The position numbers and the translations under genes are program-made. Shown piece after piece: positions 13,914 to 31,517 of a DNA stretch of 64,000 nucleotides. The stretch is from Adineta vaga (Eukaryota; Animalia; Rotifera): NCBI GenBank assembly GCA_021613535.1, contig CP075495.1:10230001-10294000 (forward strand), in the 5' to 3' direction. Positions within the stretch are counted from its first letter, which is position 1. Each line of letters opens with the position of its first letter. The notes below the pieces were generated by a model that saw only the letters and a program-made list of their open reading frames with translations, was not told the origin of the DNA and did not search any database.

Positions 13914-16818
13914 TCACTGGTGTGCAGAGAACATGAGTAAATAGAGAGATGAATGTTTATGTATATTTATATATGTATAGATATTTATATATGTGCGTGT
14001 ATAAGTGATTTGAAAAATAAAATTTATGAAGGAAATTTTGGTGGTGAACCAATTATTGTTGGTGATGTTGTCGTAGGTTGTTGCAAGTACAGAACTACGT
14101 CGTGGTCGATCAGCATCTTCCATGGACATTGCACGAGATAAACGACCTAAACCAGCTAAACCTGCTTCCATTGGTAAACCAGATACTAGAAAATAAACAT
14201 AGTTAAGGTGAAAATCATTGATAAAGATACATACATAATCCAATGCCTTGTAAAAAGAATTGCATTGATTTTGCTAAGACATCAGGCTAAATGGAAATAA
14301 CAGGGTTTATTAGAAGAAGAAGAAAAAAAACAGTTATAGTTTGTTTTTGTTACTTACAGCTTCACCGAGTACATCACCAACATCATCTGCGACAAGTAAT
14401 GGTGAATTGACCATTTTTTGAGGATTATTACGTGATTCACGAAGTCGTTCATAGAATTTTTCTGTTGTACCAATAACTGAACTTTTTTTTCCGACAGCTA
14501 CCAAACAGTCAACACTAAAAATAAACAAATTATCTAAATAATTCAGACTTATTTTTATAAACGAAAATCTATTGATTTCTTTCATTCGACAATTGGCTCT
14601 TATTTTTATGATTAATTATCGGTCAACTATCAACATAGCATGCTATATTGTCTCTTGGAATTTAAATAATTAAAAATCTCATCAACTAATATTCCGACTA
14701 TTCCCATGAGAATCAATAAATGTTACTATGCAAATCTATAATATATGATGGAAAACTTACGTTAATTTGTCCAATTTATCCACAAGATTAGTTCGACTAT
14801 AAATAGAAAAGTATTGTTTTTTTTCTTTCTTTCTCTAAATCAAACTAATTTCATTTTGACTTACTTCAAAAAAGCATCCATAAATAAAGCCAAATTTTTC
14901 GCCGTTCTCTTTTGATAAAGTTTTTCCGAAAATTCACGAATATTTGCTTCAAGTAATTGAGAATCACCATAACCCTAGACAACGTGGAAAAAAACGATCG
15001 AAATTTATTCTTAATCAATTCAAAACTAGGAAAAAAAACGTATTAATTGAACATTCATGCAGCATATCTAGATTTTGTTAGTAAATAAAACAAGAAATTT
15101 AATACCTTAACATCTTTTGAATAGTTTGCAAACATCGATTTCTGCAAAAATTTAGCTCATAATATACACATAGTTAACTTAACATACAAAATAACCACGA
15201 GAGCACAAAAGAAAATAATGAAGGAACTCTAGAGAGAAGAACTCATGCTTAGGTAAACAAAATTTTCGTTGATAGAATGAATGAAATTAAAATTACACCT
15301 TGTTCTTGTGCAGATCGTCGTTAGACTATAAAAGCATTGAAAATCATAAAAAAAGAGGACAAGTCTAAGACAATCTTAACAAAACAAGAATCTAATCGAA
15401 TTATCAATGCATACTTTAAAAGAATTCTTTCGTTCAATTTTCTATATATATATATATGCAATAGGTTATGCAAGTGACTTATTATTTTATAGGCAACAAA
15501 GAGAATAATCCAATCGTATCACATTACACATACCTTTGCTGCATCCTAAAATGAATAGAAATATATGCATATTTATAATGAAAAGAATTGAGCTATGAAA
15601 TAACATACTCGACCAAATCGATGCCAAATGAGATAAGCTTCAGCATCAGGATTCATTCCTTTGTGAATTAATTTCCAGTTATTAAGTTTATCCTTCATCA
15701 TTTCCATAAAACCAGCAGTTGTACCAGTTGGATGAACAAGTACAAGGCCATGAACACGCGATGGATATTCAATAGCAAAACGACATGCAATATTAGCTCC
15801 TGCTCCTTCACCAAATATAACTACTTGTGGAATATTTAAATGATCAACAATATTTATTAATTCACTAGCTATATCATCTAAACTTGGATACTTTCTACAA
15901 ATAGAAGATTTGTTTTTTTTTGAAAAACTATATTCAAATCTTGACATATGAATATTTACTCGATAGATAGAGCAGCAGCATCATCTTCTTGTCCAGGTAA
16001 ATCAACATGTACCCAAACAATTCGTTGTTTACTAGAAATATAAAACAATACAATTTCAATCAAATATATTCTATCAATTCATTTCAAAGACTTACAGAGC
16101 ACGCATTTCAGGTTGAGAAACATATTCAGTAAAAACTGAATCTAAATTGTTTAATAAAAATTGATTACAATGCTTTCAAAATCAAAAATTCGTCTTCACT
16201 TACGACTACAACCAATATCATGGATAGTCATAACATAACATTTCGAATTACTACCAGTATCGTCCTGAAATAAATTCATAGATTCGGGTTTTTCTTTGTG
16301 AAAATAATTCTTACTTGAACCCATGCGGTATAATCAAGACCAAGCTTGTTCGATCGGATCACATATTTCTAAACAAAAGTATACATTTATATTCCATATT
16401 CACAAACTTTTTTTATTAATTTATTAGTAAGAAGAGCAGCAAAACGTATTTTCTATCTAAACTTACTGGAAGACTTGAATTCTATTGAAAATAAAAATAC
16501 AAAACAAATCAAATCAATATATTATTTTTTAATCACAAATATAAAACTAAACTATTCTTCATCTCCTTATTTAAGATATCTTGAAAACAACTTATGCAAA
16601 CGATATCTATCTAGCGTAAGAAACTGTTTCAATGCTTTTCTTAATTTGTCCGTTAGAGTAAAGAACAACAGATATTTGTCAGAAAGAACGTTTATCTGAA
16701 GTATATTTTTCGCGTGTAATCAAATAGAAGAAATGGAAATATCTGAAAATATACTCACTTGATTTTGTTCAACTGTTGCAAGTTTTTCAAGTAATCCTGT
16801 ACGATCCATTTCTTCCAT
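13914..16818 (-). CDS. NDRG-family alpha/beta-hydrolase-like protein (proximal first exon MEEMDRTGLL...), multi-exon
   Basis: Motifs MTIHDIGC, HVDLPGQEDDA, YPSLDDIASEL, FGEGAGANIACRFA..PSRVHGLVLV and FFLQGIGL. The 3' end is uncertain: 13914 as read, or 14024 if there is a frameshift. Confidence 0.92.
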
Positions 16819-25153: not shown

Positions 25154-25761
25154 ATGGCTAATATGGCAAAAACTATGGCCGATTTACAAAAACTTGGTCG
25201 TGCTGAAGATACTGAAGCATTAGAACGAACGAAAGCGTTGGATATTGAATCTGGTCAAATTTCAGAAGCTGTATATTGGTCATGTGATGAAGTTGCCGAT
25301 TTTATTGAAATGCTTGGTTTTCCACAATATCGAGTATGGTGAAGAAAGCATTTCAATTATGTCCTTTTTTTTTCATTAAAATTTACCTAGGAATGTTTCC
25401 TTCGAAATAAAGTTGATGGTCGTCGATTGATTCTATGTAATGCATCACGTTTAAATGCTCTTGGTATTACAGATTTCAAACATATTATCGTAAGTAGAAG
25501 GTTAATAAGAAAATGTATCTTGTGATGATTTCGATTTAGTCTATATCGAAAAGTATTCGAGATCTTTTAAACATTGAAGAACCTTTTTGGAATCGAAGTA
25601 TTTCGTTGCCTTATATGGAATCGATTGGTCGATATCTCGAACAACGTAGCATAATCGGTCGTCGAGCAGATGAATTAGATTATGAAACATTTACAAATGA
25701 AACACGTGACACTAAATATCAACCAATTTTAACCAATCAAGGTATTCTTAATTGGATCTAA
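25154..25761 (+). CDS. SAMD15: Sterile alpha motif domain-containing protein 15-like, 3 exons
   Basis: WSCDEVADFIEMLGFPQYR|ECFLRNKVDGRRLILCNASRLNALGITDFKHI..IRDLLNIEEPFWNRSISLP..IGRYLEQRS. Confidence 0.85.
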
Positions 25762-25827
25762 CATTATTTATTTATATCTAATCACACACGAATAAATTTA
25801 CAAAATATGAGAAAAAAAAGAATGTTT

Positions 25828-28800
25828 CTATACAGCATAACCATAGTATGGATCCTCATTAGAATTAAACAGCAGATTCGCTTCCAACTCGACTTGGTGG
25901 TCGTTGGATTGATAATGACGATCCCTTGTCCGCAATGCCGACGTCGGTACTCTACACGAAATTATAAATTTTAAATTATCTTATTAAAATCATTGCAAAT
26001 GATAAGCTGTAGATGTAGGCATTAAACAAAAGGGCATGGATCAGAAGTGCGAATGCAAATTCAAGCAGATTATCTTACCGATCATCACGCGCTGATAACC
26101 GTGATGGCTAGAGATAGATATAGAGAGAAATATAGCAACTGAATGTCATTAATGACAGAAAACTTCTTCGCTTTGACATTTCATTCAAATAAGACTTTAG
26201 GTTTTAACTTACCTTTGATCTGGCTAATGTTTCACGTGATAATGTTCGTTTTTTCAATCGATCGAATACAGAAGCAAGAGCACTTTCATGACCACCATGA
26301 TAATAATGAACTTTCTTTCGATTTTGCTCTAGCAAAGGTCCCCATTTCTGTTCAGGATTGATCAATACACTAGGTGACTAAAAACGATAATTAATCATGA
26401 CATTAAATTAAATATGCAACAAAATCTATCATTTGTATATTCTTACGTTTCGATCGATAAGAACAAAATGTATAATAGCATAGAGAGCATATAATACAAT
26501 TCCAGACAAAATTAAAGCTGTCAAACCCCAACCAAGTTTATATGTCCAAAGTGGAAAATAATACTTTCCAAGTGTAAGTGGTGGATAATGAATTGATGTG
26601 AAAATAATTAATGCCTAAATAATTCGAATCTGAGAGAAACAAAACATGAATTTCTTATTTGACATACCAAAATTAATAATGGTGTAATAAATAGCCAACA
26701 TATTTTAAAAAGAGGAAAAAGTCGTACACCCCAATCTTTTTCACCAAGCATTACTTTTATATCATCACGGAAATTATTACATCCTAGAAATATCAAACAA
26801 AGCAATAGAGTAAAAAAATAGAACATTGGCTTTCTTCTTCTATAGATAATATTAATGAAATACGAACCGTATACATAAGCAATACAAATACATTCGAGAA
26901 AACCGATAACAAATGCTGGATATGAGCCAGTAAATTGATCTAAAAATGTTATCCAATAGAGACCAGCCTAGAAACAAAAATATATAAATCAGATTTAATA
27001 AGAATTCAATCTCTTGTTATTCTTTTACATCAGTACATAAAAGAAGACCAAGTCCAAACATTGTTATACAAGTAACAAGTGTAAGTAATGAACTATATCG
27101 ACGTAATCCATGAATTTGATCGGTTATAACAACAACAATTGTTTCGATACTAGCAAACTAATATATATATATAAAAGAAATCTTAATCATTTCAAAGAGC
27201 TTTATCAAAATATTTCATCTATTACCACAGAATCTAAACCAAGTAAAATAAGCATTAAAAAGAATAAAATTGACCATAACGGTGCTGCTGGAAGTGTTGT
27301 TACTGCATAGGGATAAACAATAAATGCCAAACCAGGACCTAAATATATAATTTATGTCATTGAACGACAAGTCAATCACCTAGTTACCTTCAGAAACAAC
27401 ATTTTCAACATCTTGCCCAGTTATATACGACAAATAACCAAGATATGCAAAGATAACAAATCCGGCAAATATTGAAGTGAGAACATTAGCAAAAGAGACA
27501 ACCAATGCATTTCTATAAATATTCAAAACAAAAATTGCATCATTTCTTGCCATATAAATATTTACGCGAGTGTTTTCTGATTAAATTTATTATAACTTGA
27601 AAGTGTAATTAAACCACCATATGCAACTGATAGAACGAAAAAGATTTGATTTGCTGCATCATTCCATACACGTTGATCAGCAAGACGACTAAAATCAGGT
27701 TTGATATAGAAATAAATTCCTCGTGACATGCCAGGTAATGTCCAACCACGAATACCAAGAATAAGAAGGATAACATATGGAAATATTGAAGTAAAATATA
27801 CAACCTAGATAAATAAATAAAAGTCATTTTATTTCGTTTGAATTCATAAGCAATGAGAAAAGGTAATTTGAGAAAGCAAGACGACCGATCATAAGCATGA
27901 GAATATTCAATCAAAAGGAAATTTTTTGAATTTAGCAGGCACAAATGACCCATACATCATAAATACTTACACAAAATCTTAACTAAAAAATGATCATATC
28001 ATTCGAAATGAAATATCTATCAATTAAAAATCAGTCTATTTTCTTACTTTTCCCGAAAGTTTTATTCCACGACAGAGACAAGCAAAAATCAGAACCCATG
28101 TTCCTAATAAACTCAATACAAGTGGCCATTCCATTGTTGAAATATCACCCATACCAGTTGATTTATTCAATATATAATTACTAAAAGACGATAAAATAGA
28201 ATTCATCCTATATAAACAATAAAACTCGTTTGATTTACTTGAAATAATCATCTGATGGTAGAACAGGTCTTTTAAATTGTAATCGTTTTTCAAGATTCCA
28301 CCAACCAATAGTAATAGATGTTTTACCTTGTGCATCCCATAGATAGCAACGACCATTTGGATCTCGGAAAGTATTCTCGTAATTACAAGGCGTTAGAAAA
28401 GAAGTAAAATTATCCGTACAATCTATAAAATCAAGATGTTTATTGAATCTATTATATGTCACGTCATACTTAGTCCAGCCCATGGTGAATTACAAGTTGC
28501 CCATTCAAGTTTCGAACGAAATGATAATACAAAATACAGAATTGAATAAGCCACTAACATAGCATAATACACCGTCATAAAAAATGACATGATACACATG
28601 GATATACCAAGACCTCAAAGAAAAGATAAAGAAGATTAATGCAATTGAAGTTTTGAACAGAAAAAGTTACCTTTAAAAATAGGAGCCATTCTCCAACATT
28701 GAAATGGACTTTGAGAAGTAAATTGTCCAAGACTGACTTCAAGATAAAATAATGGAATACCAAGAAAGATTAGAAAGATAGCATATGGTATGAGAAAAAC

Positions 28801-30176
28801 ACCTAGAAATAAGAATGAAAATAATTGAATAATTTCTTTTCTATTCTTTACCTCCGCCATTTCGATAACATAAATATGGAAAACGCCAAATAGCACCAAG
28901 ACCAACGGCGTAACCCAAACTTGAAAAGAAGAAATCAAATCGACCTGACCATTCTTCACGATGTGCTTTTTGATCTAAATTTCCACTTTGTGATGTTTGA
29001 TTAACACGATTTTTTCTTGGAGCTGGTACAGGTTCATTCTATTGATCAATAATATATATAATATGATAAGAAAAAGAAATTGAATTACCTCTGTATTACG
29101 TTCAGGAGTTATTTTCTCTGTACCAAATGGATATTCAGATACATCTCGACTTAAATCATAACCATGATAACTTAAATTTGGATCATATTGTGGATATGAA
29201 TTAACATAGATTTGTTGAATAGGACCACCACCATCAACGTTATATGAAGTTGTTGTTGATGAAGATGTTTCATCATTTGCTGGATGTTGTTGTATACCTC
29301 CTCGTGGATCATATGAGGTACCATTTGAATTGTGTATCTATATGAAATCATTCCAAGATTTAGATCAATTCTATTCGTTATAATCTCATATGAAAAGAAA
29401 TCTTTTTTTCTCTCTAAAGAAATGATTATATCTTTCGTTTTTCAGTCTCTACATAATTATTTTCAAAATTATATAGTTCGATTAAATCTTAGTTCAACTG
29501 ATTTCTCTTTCTTTCTTTTTGAATATATTTTTTTATCATTGTAATTCAATATTTTGTTCATATGTAATCTTAGATGAGTTTTATCACTCGTTTGTTAAAC
29601 AAAATGAATAAAGTCAAGATTAATTAACAAAAGAACATATAAACAGTGAAATCGAATTGTATCCAACTACATAGATACAATTATTCTTATTTTTAATGAA
29701 GAAACCAAACTAATCTAATATGTTCTAGTCTCATTATGATAAAAACTAGACTTGTATGTTTTTTTTCCATCGTACATTGTTTAGTTCATCAATCTTGTTC
29801 AAATATAATTTGATGATATATGAATTCAATGTTATTTCTTTAAATTTAAAGAGGAATCTTTTGAATATAATAAAATGTGAAGTTCAATAAAAAAAAGAAG
29901 ATATGATGTAAATATCATAACTTTGATCTATAGAAAGAGATCGATTACTTATCAAGAATAGTATTTATGTCAAGCGGATATTATTTCTCAATTCTATCAA
30001 TAAATATTTGTACTGATTATTTGGTTTTTTTCCTCCTTCTTTCATTCTTCTTCTAATAGGTAGAATTTTCAAGGTTAAAACTATTGAAATAATACAATAC
30101 AATTTCATTTTCTTACCTGATTCGACCCTTCACCTGAGAAGTCTTGTTTCAATGGATTAAGATTGTGCATATTCAT
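25828..30176 (-). CDS. SLC6 Na+/Cl- dependent neurotransmitter/amino-acid transporter (glycine/proline/ATB0-like branch), multi-exon
   Basis: [83 protein letters not shown] and P..WGP tail. Two possible C-termini (stops at 25865 or 25828). Confidence 0.95.
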
Positions 30177-31517
30177 TTCTGTTTATACAAATCAAAACTA
30201 ACTGTCCTCAACTGATCTATATATGCATATGCATGAAGAAATTCATTTACTAGTTTGTATTCATACGACAGTTTTCTCTTTCATTCCTCTCTCTCCTGTG
30301 TCCTAGTGGTCATTTTCTTTCTTTTTCTCTTTTTCGGATGGTCACATACGTATGTATATATACACGTTACTTCTAACGTGCGTCTACGGGTCATGTTATT
30401 CATACGAGAATGAAGAAAAAACAGAAAATGAACTAAAAGGACGATTGAACTGTGTCACTAGGCTATATTTTTTGCATACCTGTCGATACATCACCAATTG
30501 CTTGTAGAAGTATGTTAGAACCAAATTGATAAAGGACAAAAAAACCACAAGACCAAAAATGATACTATCAGACTAGACGAATGAGAAAGATTTTTTTTCT
30601 ATATAACTTGTTTTTTTTTCTCTTTTTTCTTTTCTCTCTATTAACTTCACAACACATGCACACATTATGTACATGTAGGCACGAAATTGGAGGACACGTA
30701 GGTAATATGAAGAGAAAGAGAGAGAGAGAGAGAAAAAGAAAAGATGACTATTACTTCCAATCTACAACAAGGAGGATTTTTGACATTTATAACATTAAAG
30801 AATAAGTATGAGTAAAAAAAAAGCAATTCAAAGATATGACGTGCTCGTCTGTTTAATATAACAAGATGTTATTTTATCTTAAGAGAAACGTTTTTTTTTG
30901 TGTTCTTTGATGAACAACTGCAACAATAAAACAATCAAAATTTGACCTCGAGTATTGTTCGTGCATTGAGAAATACTCTTTTATGCAATTCTTTACTTCA
31001 AAGCATTAGTCTCAATACAAATTATTGCTTAATAGATTCTATTTTTAGCCTACAATATAGCAGACATTTATTTTATACAATTATAATCAAGGTAATAGTA
31101 TATGAGTCAATATTAAATACTAAATTACAAATAAAAAATTGCATGTTTTTTGCTTTCTATTGAAATGATTCATTTGCATTGATTTTTAGTAAACTGTAAG
31201 TATAAATGACATGTAAACTCTTATAGTTTTATGACTGATAATATATAAAATAATAAAAAAAAGCGAAAGAATATTTCTTCTAATTCTCAATTGCCTATGA
31301 TGTTTTATTAACAGAAAAATGATACTTTTTTATCACCTGATATAAGATTGTAATTGATAAGTAGTATTGACGTATTCTTTGAAATTACTGAATCAAAACA
31401 TAATGTTACGCAATTACTACTCGTTTCATGACACATCATTCTGTTATTTTTCTAAAAGACTATAGAAATGTACGTATAAATAACGAGAATCGAAGACGAG
31501 TAAATATATTATTTACG

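Follow-up and report, generated by a model that had tools for sequence, protein, structure and literature searches.

The stretch of the Adineta vaga genome analyzed here (contig CP075495.1, positions 10,230,001 to 10,294,000 of the forward strand; 64,000 nucleotides (nt), hereafter the window) carries on its minus strand a 17-exon gene of the SLC6 transporter family (PF00209), nearest to GlyT2. A 29-nt cassette micro-exon precedes its last exon, which is read in one frame when the micro-exon is skipped (skip form) and in another when it is included (include form). This dual-coding splice switch is conserved, and both mRNAs exist. The features on which the analysis turns are listed below in window coordinates.

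25828..30176, minus strand: SLC6 coding span, 748 codons in 15 constitutive coding exons, followed by micro-exon and last exon
26213..26377, minus strand: exon 15, 55 codons, cytosolic C-terminal stalk, phase 0 at both ends, donor for both isoforms
26108..26212, minus strand: intron upstream of the micro-exon, 105 nt, with a conserved pyrimidine/TA-rich acceptor tract running into tatctatctctag
26079..26107, minus strand: cassette micro-exon, 29 nt (3n+2), read with its splice sites as tctctag/CCATCACGGTTATCAGCGCGTGATGATCG/gtaaga
26063..26078, minus strand: intronic element gtaagataatctgctt, 16 nt directly after the micro-exon donor, a candidate splicing-regulatory element
25952..26078, minus strand: intron between micro-exon and last exon, 127 nt; with 26079–26212 it makes up the 261-nt intron of the skip form
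25865..25951, minus strand: dual-coding part of the last exon, starting tgtag/agtacc; skip frame of 28 codons ending GSESAV, stop taa
25828..25864, minus strand: include-only extension, 12 further codons and stop tag (25830–25828); 3' untranslated region (UTR) in the skip form

The gene was rebuilt from spliced joints in RNA contigs together with GT..AG boundaries; exons were searched singly, and the frame was tracked by exon phase. Counted exon by exon, exons 1–15 run from an ATG at 30176 to 26213, comprise 2,244 coding nt, and end in phase 0, where exon 15 closes with tcaaag/gtaagt. The internal introns from 26378 to 29088 were all confirmed as CT..AC joints in RNA contigs. The joints listed—13 CT..AC and a 14th CT..CG—match the gene model, the three tail joints not being among them. 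Exon 1 (30176–30117) and its 776-nt intron (29338–30116) were placed from sequence and contig coverage only. This intron and one of 243 nt at 27805–28047 lie far above the norm of ~55 nt.

Profile and ortholog searches agree on the identity of the gene. Against the PF00209 SNF profile, exon 8 scores 105.7 bits (profile positions 205–281) and exon 3 scores 54.3 bits (positions 1–36); exon 14, at 21.7 bits (positions 476–522), falls below the cut-off when taken alone, and exon 15 has no Pfam match. A search with the exon-15 peptide led to full-length orthologs in Adineta steineri (P0002), Rotaria sordida (P0020), and Adineta ricciae (P0021), all of which carry PF00209, and exon 15 is 52–86% identical to 11 orthologous sequences. 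Among solved structures, P0002 matches GlyT2 best (E 1e-153), followed by a proline transporter and GlyT1 (E 3e-137 for GlyT1). By sequence similarity, the gene is a GlyT2/proline-transporter-like SLC6 member of a bdelloid rotifer. A close duplicate (ohnolog) was sought in the source genome (100.8 Mb in 6 contigs, with the window on contig 2), where DNA and exon-15 peptide searches returned only the gene itself. A paralog on contig 4 (~45% identity), found with the exon-14 peptide (47% identity), was dropped as a comparator: its exons are 21–69% identical and its tail shows no homology.

Splice forms of the last exon

The initial annotation had described a micro-exon between long introns, ahead of a GC- and CpG-rich last exon open in two frames. 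Its micro-exon, splice-site, and last-exon coordinates all hold on the minus-strand reading, and the composition is as described. The flanking introns measure 105 and 127 nt, where the gene's 14 other introns have a median length of 57.5 nt; GC content reaches 55% (micro-exon) and 45% (last exon) vs. 34% in exons 1–15; and CpG is three to six times denser, at 138/kb in the micro-exon and 64/kb in the last exon vs. 22/kb in exons 1–15. Both last-exon frames are open, and the tails end in ESAV (skip) and GYAV (include).

The micro-exon encodes PSRLSARDD and the first two bases of an Arg codon (split cg/a). With a length of 3n+2, an included micro-exon puts the terminal exon into a different reading frame. 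The skip product has 776 amino acids, of which the last 28 form the tail ending GSESAV, and terminates at 25867–25865. The include product reads these bases shifted by one and has 798 amino acids, with a 50-codon tail (PSRLSARDD, Arg, then 40 codons) that contains an acidic DDD patch and a basic linker and ends YYGYAV, in the pattern Y-x-G-Y-x-V. The same 84 nt of the last exon therefore specify two unrelated peptides.

Sequence conservation extends into the introns around the micro-exon. The acceptor tract atcta(t/c)(a/c)tctag is common to A. ricciae, A. steineri, R. sordida, and two of the contigs compared below (L016 and L017). The element gtaagataatctgctt after the donor is identical in A. 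vaga, A. steineri, L016, L017, and a third contig, L018, with one mismatch in A. ricciae. Other introns of the gene, such as intron 14, cannot be aligned between lineages.

A short motif, AATCTGCT, occurs twice in direct orientation, once in gtaagatAATCTGCTt after the micro-exon donor (26063–26078) and once in gcgAATCTGCTgtt at the end of the skip coding sequence (25868–25879), where it encodes ESAV. Since each copy is conserved between lineages, the two may share a role as a protein-binding site.

Transcript evidence comes from 12 public runs that hold the gene; contigs from four of them (X1, X5, X9, and X11, from four studies) were placed on 25300–30700. These contigs are spliced at every internal intron of the model and are therefore RNA-derived, the run type itself being our guess. 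Contigs from X5 stop short of the tail, and the evidence on the tail comes from X1, X9, and X11, representing three studies. The junctions on which the initial annotation had staked its two isoforms were recovered in assembled contigs, the include junctions in X1 and both skip and include junctions in X9 and in X11.

In X1, a 1,901-nt contig carries 25540–25951 at its positions 306–717 and 26213–26377 at positions 747–911, leaving exactly 29 letters between them. The depth in the micro-exon bin (1.43) equals the contig depth scaled by the micro-exon's share of the bin (8.91 × 29/181), which indicates that the micro-exon is included. In X9 and in X11, one contig breaks off from the last exon at 25953 and another from the micro-exon at 26109. 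The four contigs all run on into the same ten letters, TTGATCTGGC, the plus-strand start of exon 15. An attempt to obtain an isoform ratio from contig depths was abandoned, the arithmetic being inconsistent between bins.

Neither form had been expected to trigger nonsense-mediated decay, and the argument is structurally sound: the last exon contains both stops (25867–25865 and 25830–25828), and the RNA contigs are unspliced from 25951 to 25540, with no minus-strand intron in that stretch and no exon junction >50 nt downstream of either stop.

Conservation across bdelloid lineages

We compared the locus with the genomic loci of the three orthologous proteins, a second R. sordida copy, and six contigs from ENA, JGI, and Logan assemblies. 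The complete orthologous sequences are those of A. ricciae, A. steineri, R. sordida, and five contigs; L016, a ninth, breaks off just short of the include stop. The micro-exon measures 29 nt and is bounded as tag/...gatcg/gtaag in A. vaga, A. ricciae, A. steineri, R. sordida copy A, L011, L015, L016, and L017. Across lineages its length is 29 nt in eight, 32 nt in two (L012 among them), and a predicted 11 nt in one (L018), and it is therefore 3n+2 in every version. Its most conserved part is GATGATGATCG (DDD-R), the sole part left in the predicted 11-nt version.

The upstream intron of R. sordida copy A measures 961 nt (L013:7160–8120), vs. 93–111 nt in the other lineages.

In these sequences, the last exon retains both of its frames. 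The skip tail has 28 codons and ends in ESAV before the stop in 9/9 orthologous sequences (GSESAV in eight, GGESAV in L018), and its ratio of nonsynonymous to synonymous p-distance (pN/pS) of 0.33 is close to the 0.31 of exon 15. The +1 frame is likewise open in 9/9 orthologous sequences, and in 9/9 complete sequences the include frame runs for exactly 40 codons without a stop. Include tails end in GYAV, GYPV (three lineages), GVSV, GYCV, GYRV, GYRA, or HRV. The include stop keeps one fixed position while its codon varies among TAG, TAA, and TGA, and the terminal codons follow the pattern ggt-ta(t/c)-nnn-gt(a/c/t/g), with Val encoded by gta, gtc, gtt, and gtg and Tyr by tat and tac. The ten last exons align without gaps over the 124 nt to the include stop, and gaps start within a few bases after it. 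Interruption of one frame in orthologs would have told against the initial annotation; neither frame is interrupted in 8/8 complete orthologous sequences, and both tail ends are conserved.

Public gene models are divided between the two forms: the include tail appears in A. ricciae P0021 and the skip tail in A. steineri P0002 and R. sordida P0020. Bdelloid annotations thus now list only one of the two forms per species. C-terminal queries with P0002 and P0021 returned no annotated orthologs beyond three and one proteins, respectively, leaving A. ricciae as the sole include-tail model found.

A likeness, QVE(L/I)E, between the A. vaga include tail and the annotated tail of R. sordida copy B was rejected. 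In an ungapped alignment the shared 8-mer is 5 nt out of register, and the likeness is therefore treated as coincidence.

Openness of both frames in one genome carries little weight. In this gene, the +1 frame is free of stops in 34% of 27-codon windows and, when the codons of the skip peptide are reshuffled synonymously, in 31% of trials; another 13 codons of UTR-like sequence would be open by chance with a probability of ~0.31; both frames are open in one genome with a chance of ~0.1. The case accordingly depends on RNA and orthologs and not on a single sequence. With constraint on the skip frame only, +1 would be open with a chance of 0.22–0.65 per lineage, and the product over nine lineages, ~1e-4, overstates significance because the lineages are related. 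The synonymous p-distance (pS) between Adineta and Rotaria is ~0.5, and pS is 0.50 in the overlap vs. 0.57 in exon 15. Taken across Adineta, Rotaria, and several other bdelloid lineages (at least two bdelloid families), the alignments show that the switch architecture is kept by selection.

Two C-terminal ends and their possible roles

In A. vaga, the two tails match different consensus classes of PDZ ligands. The skip end, -E-S-A-V, fits class I (S/T-x-hydrophobic-COOH) in A. vaga and in all nine orthologous skip tails, as a motif match. For the include end, YAV, YPV, YCV, YRV, VSV, and YRA fit class II (hydrophobic-x-hydrophobic-COOH), and HRV (L011) does not. Known class II ligands include syndecan (-EFYA), neurexin (-EYYV), and ephrin-B (-YYKV). 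The rotifer ends YYGYAV, GYPV, and GYRA share with these an aromatic residue at −2, Val or Ala at 0, and an upstream Tyr, a resemblance of motif only; the Gly at −3 in the rotifer tails is not typical of them. At least 140 PDZ-domain matches occur in the genome, and partners may therefore exist.

GlyT2 (SLC6A5) and GlyT1 (SLC6A9) are the closest solved relatives by sequence, and GlyT2 resembles the rotifer gene in having a long N-terminus and a C-terminal PDZ ligand, although the PDZ motif of vertebrate GlyT2 is described as type III. To our knowledge, no frame-shifting micro-exon has been reported in GlyT2. The PDZ ligand of GlyT2 is needed for synaptic localization and binds syntenin-1 (PMC3590132).

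The choice of a 29-nt cassette exon sets the cytosolic C-terminus of the transporter. The include frame passes the skip stop out of frame and adds 12 codons. Each tail would consist of a disordered linker of fixed length, kept open, and a short conserved C-terminal motif, with ESAV as a putative class I ligand and Y-x-V as a putative ligand of class II, like those of syndecan, neurexin, or ephrin-B. Because the tails would then carry different PDZ ligand classes, the splice choice would change the scaffold or trafficking partner that holds the transporter, and the conserved flanks of the micro-exon could serve as handles for regulating inclusion. A switch of scaffold or sorting partner is the most likely function. 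We regard as probable the full explanation, in which the micro-exon picks the transporter C-terminus, the two tails are PDZ ligands, and the splice choice changes the scaffold or trafficking partner.

Several results weigh against this explanation. A PDZ role for the tails is plausible, and what speaks for it is motif consensus. Three lineages end in VSV, HRV, or YRA instead of Y-x-V. The include frame conserves only its openness, its length, and its last few residues: in the overlap it carries no amino-acid constraint of its own (pN/pS 1.46), and apart from the last residues the include-only extension is loosely constrained (pN/pS 0.68). Suppression of synonymous change, which the initial annotation had proposed as a mark of dual coding, is only modest and marginal: at invariant codons, third-position variability falls from 0.46 in exon 15 to 0.33 in the tail (one-sided p ~0.05, n being small and the taxa related). 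The RNA support consists of assembled contigs, not reads, and gives no isoform ratio. Finally, the model leaves the second R. sordida copy, with its untranslatable micro-exon and open include frame, unexplained.

The main rival account accepts a real and conserved switch and holds that the ends are not PDZ ligands, the functional parts being either the ends as endoplasmic reticulum (ER)-export or sorting signals, or the linkers, in which the DDD patch and the Lys/Arg-rich stretch could act as ubiquitination, phosphorylation, or lipid-binding sites. Valine at the C-terminus is known to signal ER export, and Val ends both tails in nearly all lineages, which would suit one shared export signal and not two. 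The conservation of GATGATGATCG within the micro-exon, down to its sole survival in the predicted 11-nt version, would fit a functional linker, as would the dependence of GlyT2 turnover on a C-terminal lysine cluster (PMC3590132). However, positions −2 and −3 (E-S in the skip tail, G-Y in the include tail) are as conserved as position 0, which PDZ ligands need and a lone Val does not, and one lineage ends in Ala (GYRA), which class II ligands tolerate and a Val-specific signal does not. We consider this account unlikely relative to a choice between two PDZ-ligand tails.

Splicing noise would explain the locus differently: one isoform would matter, and the other would be tolerated, its frame open by chance and shared ancestry. 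The ~0.1 chance of openness in one genome, the relatedness of the lineages, whose counts are not independent, and the absence of isoform ratios from the contigs all leave room for it. Yet both C-terminal motifs are conserved from Adineta to Rotaria at a synonymous p-distance of ~0.5, the stop position is held through three different stop codons, the include end shows synonymous Val and Tyr codons, and no indels occur as far as the include stop. The micro-exon also stays 3n+2 at 29, 32, and 11 nt, and in two studies neither form was too rare to be assembled. Noise is thus a very improbable explanation.

The least credible account places the conservation past the skip stop at the nucleotide level, in a 3' UTR element or the overlapping 3' UTR of a convergent SAM-domain gene: the plus-strand coding sequence ends at 25761, 66 nt from the include stop, RNA contigs merge both genes, and a conserved block (tgtaaatttat..gtgtg) also lies beyond the include stop, but a stretch free of indels precisely as far as an in-frame stop, a stop codon that changes while its place is fixed, third-position changes preserving Val and Tyr, and a micro-exon that always shifts into that frame would all go unexplained, and the A. 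ricciae gene model translates the include frame.

The exchange of C-terminal tails by splicing has precedents in other membrane proteins. Alternative 3' splicing swaps the extreme C-terminus of the synaptic membrane proteins GluN1 (C2/C2') and GLT-1 (GLT-1a/GLT-1b), making or removing a PDZ ligand (-STVV in C2', -ETCI in GLT-1b) and altering trafficking or anchoring. The alternative tails of GluN1 and GLT-1 consist mostly of different nucleotides, whereas the rotifer gene uses the same 84 nt in two frames. In the PMCA pumps (ATP2B1–4), as in the rotifer gene, an optional non-3n exon changes the C-terminal frame of a membrane transport protein and decides its PDZ-binding end: at splice site C, all 'b' forms have the PDZ motif and 'a' forms do not (PMC8835232). 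PMCA differs in its protein family (P-type ATPase), in the animals concerned (mammals), and in its large inserted exon (154 nt in PMCA1), which lies in the calmodulin-binding domain and whose shifted form just loses the PDZ ligand; in the rotifer gene the exon has 29 nt, and the frame reached by the shift closes with another conserved motif, of a different class.

The exchange or loss of a PDZ ligand through a frame-shifting exon is thus established for PMCA pumps and glutamate receptors, and the present finding extends a known mechanism without introducing a new one. The present case differs in the micro-exon, the bases shared by both frames, the conserved motif ending each, and the setting in an SLC6 transporter of bdelloid rotifers. 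No paper was found on this locus or on bdelloid SLC6 splicing, and alternative splicing has hardly been studied in bdelloid rotifers. With one exon read in two frames, the transporter would obtain two alternative C-terminal address labels, and the case offers a testable handle on the sorting or anchoring of a glycine-transporter-like protein.

Divergent copies, the convergent gene, and other observations

The second R. sordida copy is represented by two alleles (L010:4462–4493 and L019 ~15857–15888). Its micro-exon homolog is 32 nt long and has stops in all three frames. In L010, taa replaces the tag acceptor and the AG is lost; L019 keeps tag. The skip-frame tail no longer has ESAV and has drifted to an end reading EFTTRL before the stop. 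The +1 frame is open for 40 codons (NLL...YIGYCV before the stop), and the change from ctg ctg to tta cta is synonymous only in the include frame.

In L018, a Logan contig of ERR3089238, the ancestral micro-exon acceptor is lost and the old frame carries a TAG. This TAG makes a new AG and with it a predicted 11-nt micro-exon, GATGATGATCG, at L018:2752–2762, which would still shift the frame by 2. The include frame downstream is intact and ends GYRV before the stop.

One might read this history as that of an ancient, bdelloid-wide switch between class I and class II PDZ ligands, whose tails began splitting between copies after the bdelloid genome duplication and whose micro-exon shrank to 11 nt elsewhere, a scenario that we put forward tentatively. 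If it is true, one locus would show the birth, maintenance, and subfunctionalization of a dual-coding exon.

RNA contigs depart from the reference in two respects. Position 26447, the last base of exon 14, is a minus-strand C in the assembly and a T in X1, X9, and X11 RNA contigs, a synonymous change from AAC to AAT that is probably an allele or strain difference, with RNA editing as the alternative. RNA contigs of X1 and X9 depart from the reference at 29267 (inside exon 2) and at 30333 (upstream of the ATG) and continue with ~255 unlike letters each; possible sources are an alternative acceptor or 5' exon, allelic divergence, and chimeric assembly.

The convergent gene lies on the plus strand at 25300–25761, with GT..AG introns at 25334–25390 and 25490–25539. 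RNA contigs merge it with the transporter below 25540. In A. steineri, A. ricciae, and R. sordida, this neighbor, a SAM_1/SAM_2 protein of 166 amino acids, likewise lies tail-to-tail with the transporter ortholog. Soon after the include stop (~25802–25783, minus strand), every AT-rich ortholog retains a conserved 3' UTR block, tgtaaatttat..gtgtgtg. It opens with a Pumilio-like UGUAAAU and may serve either of the two convergent genes.

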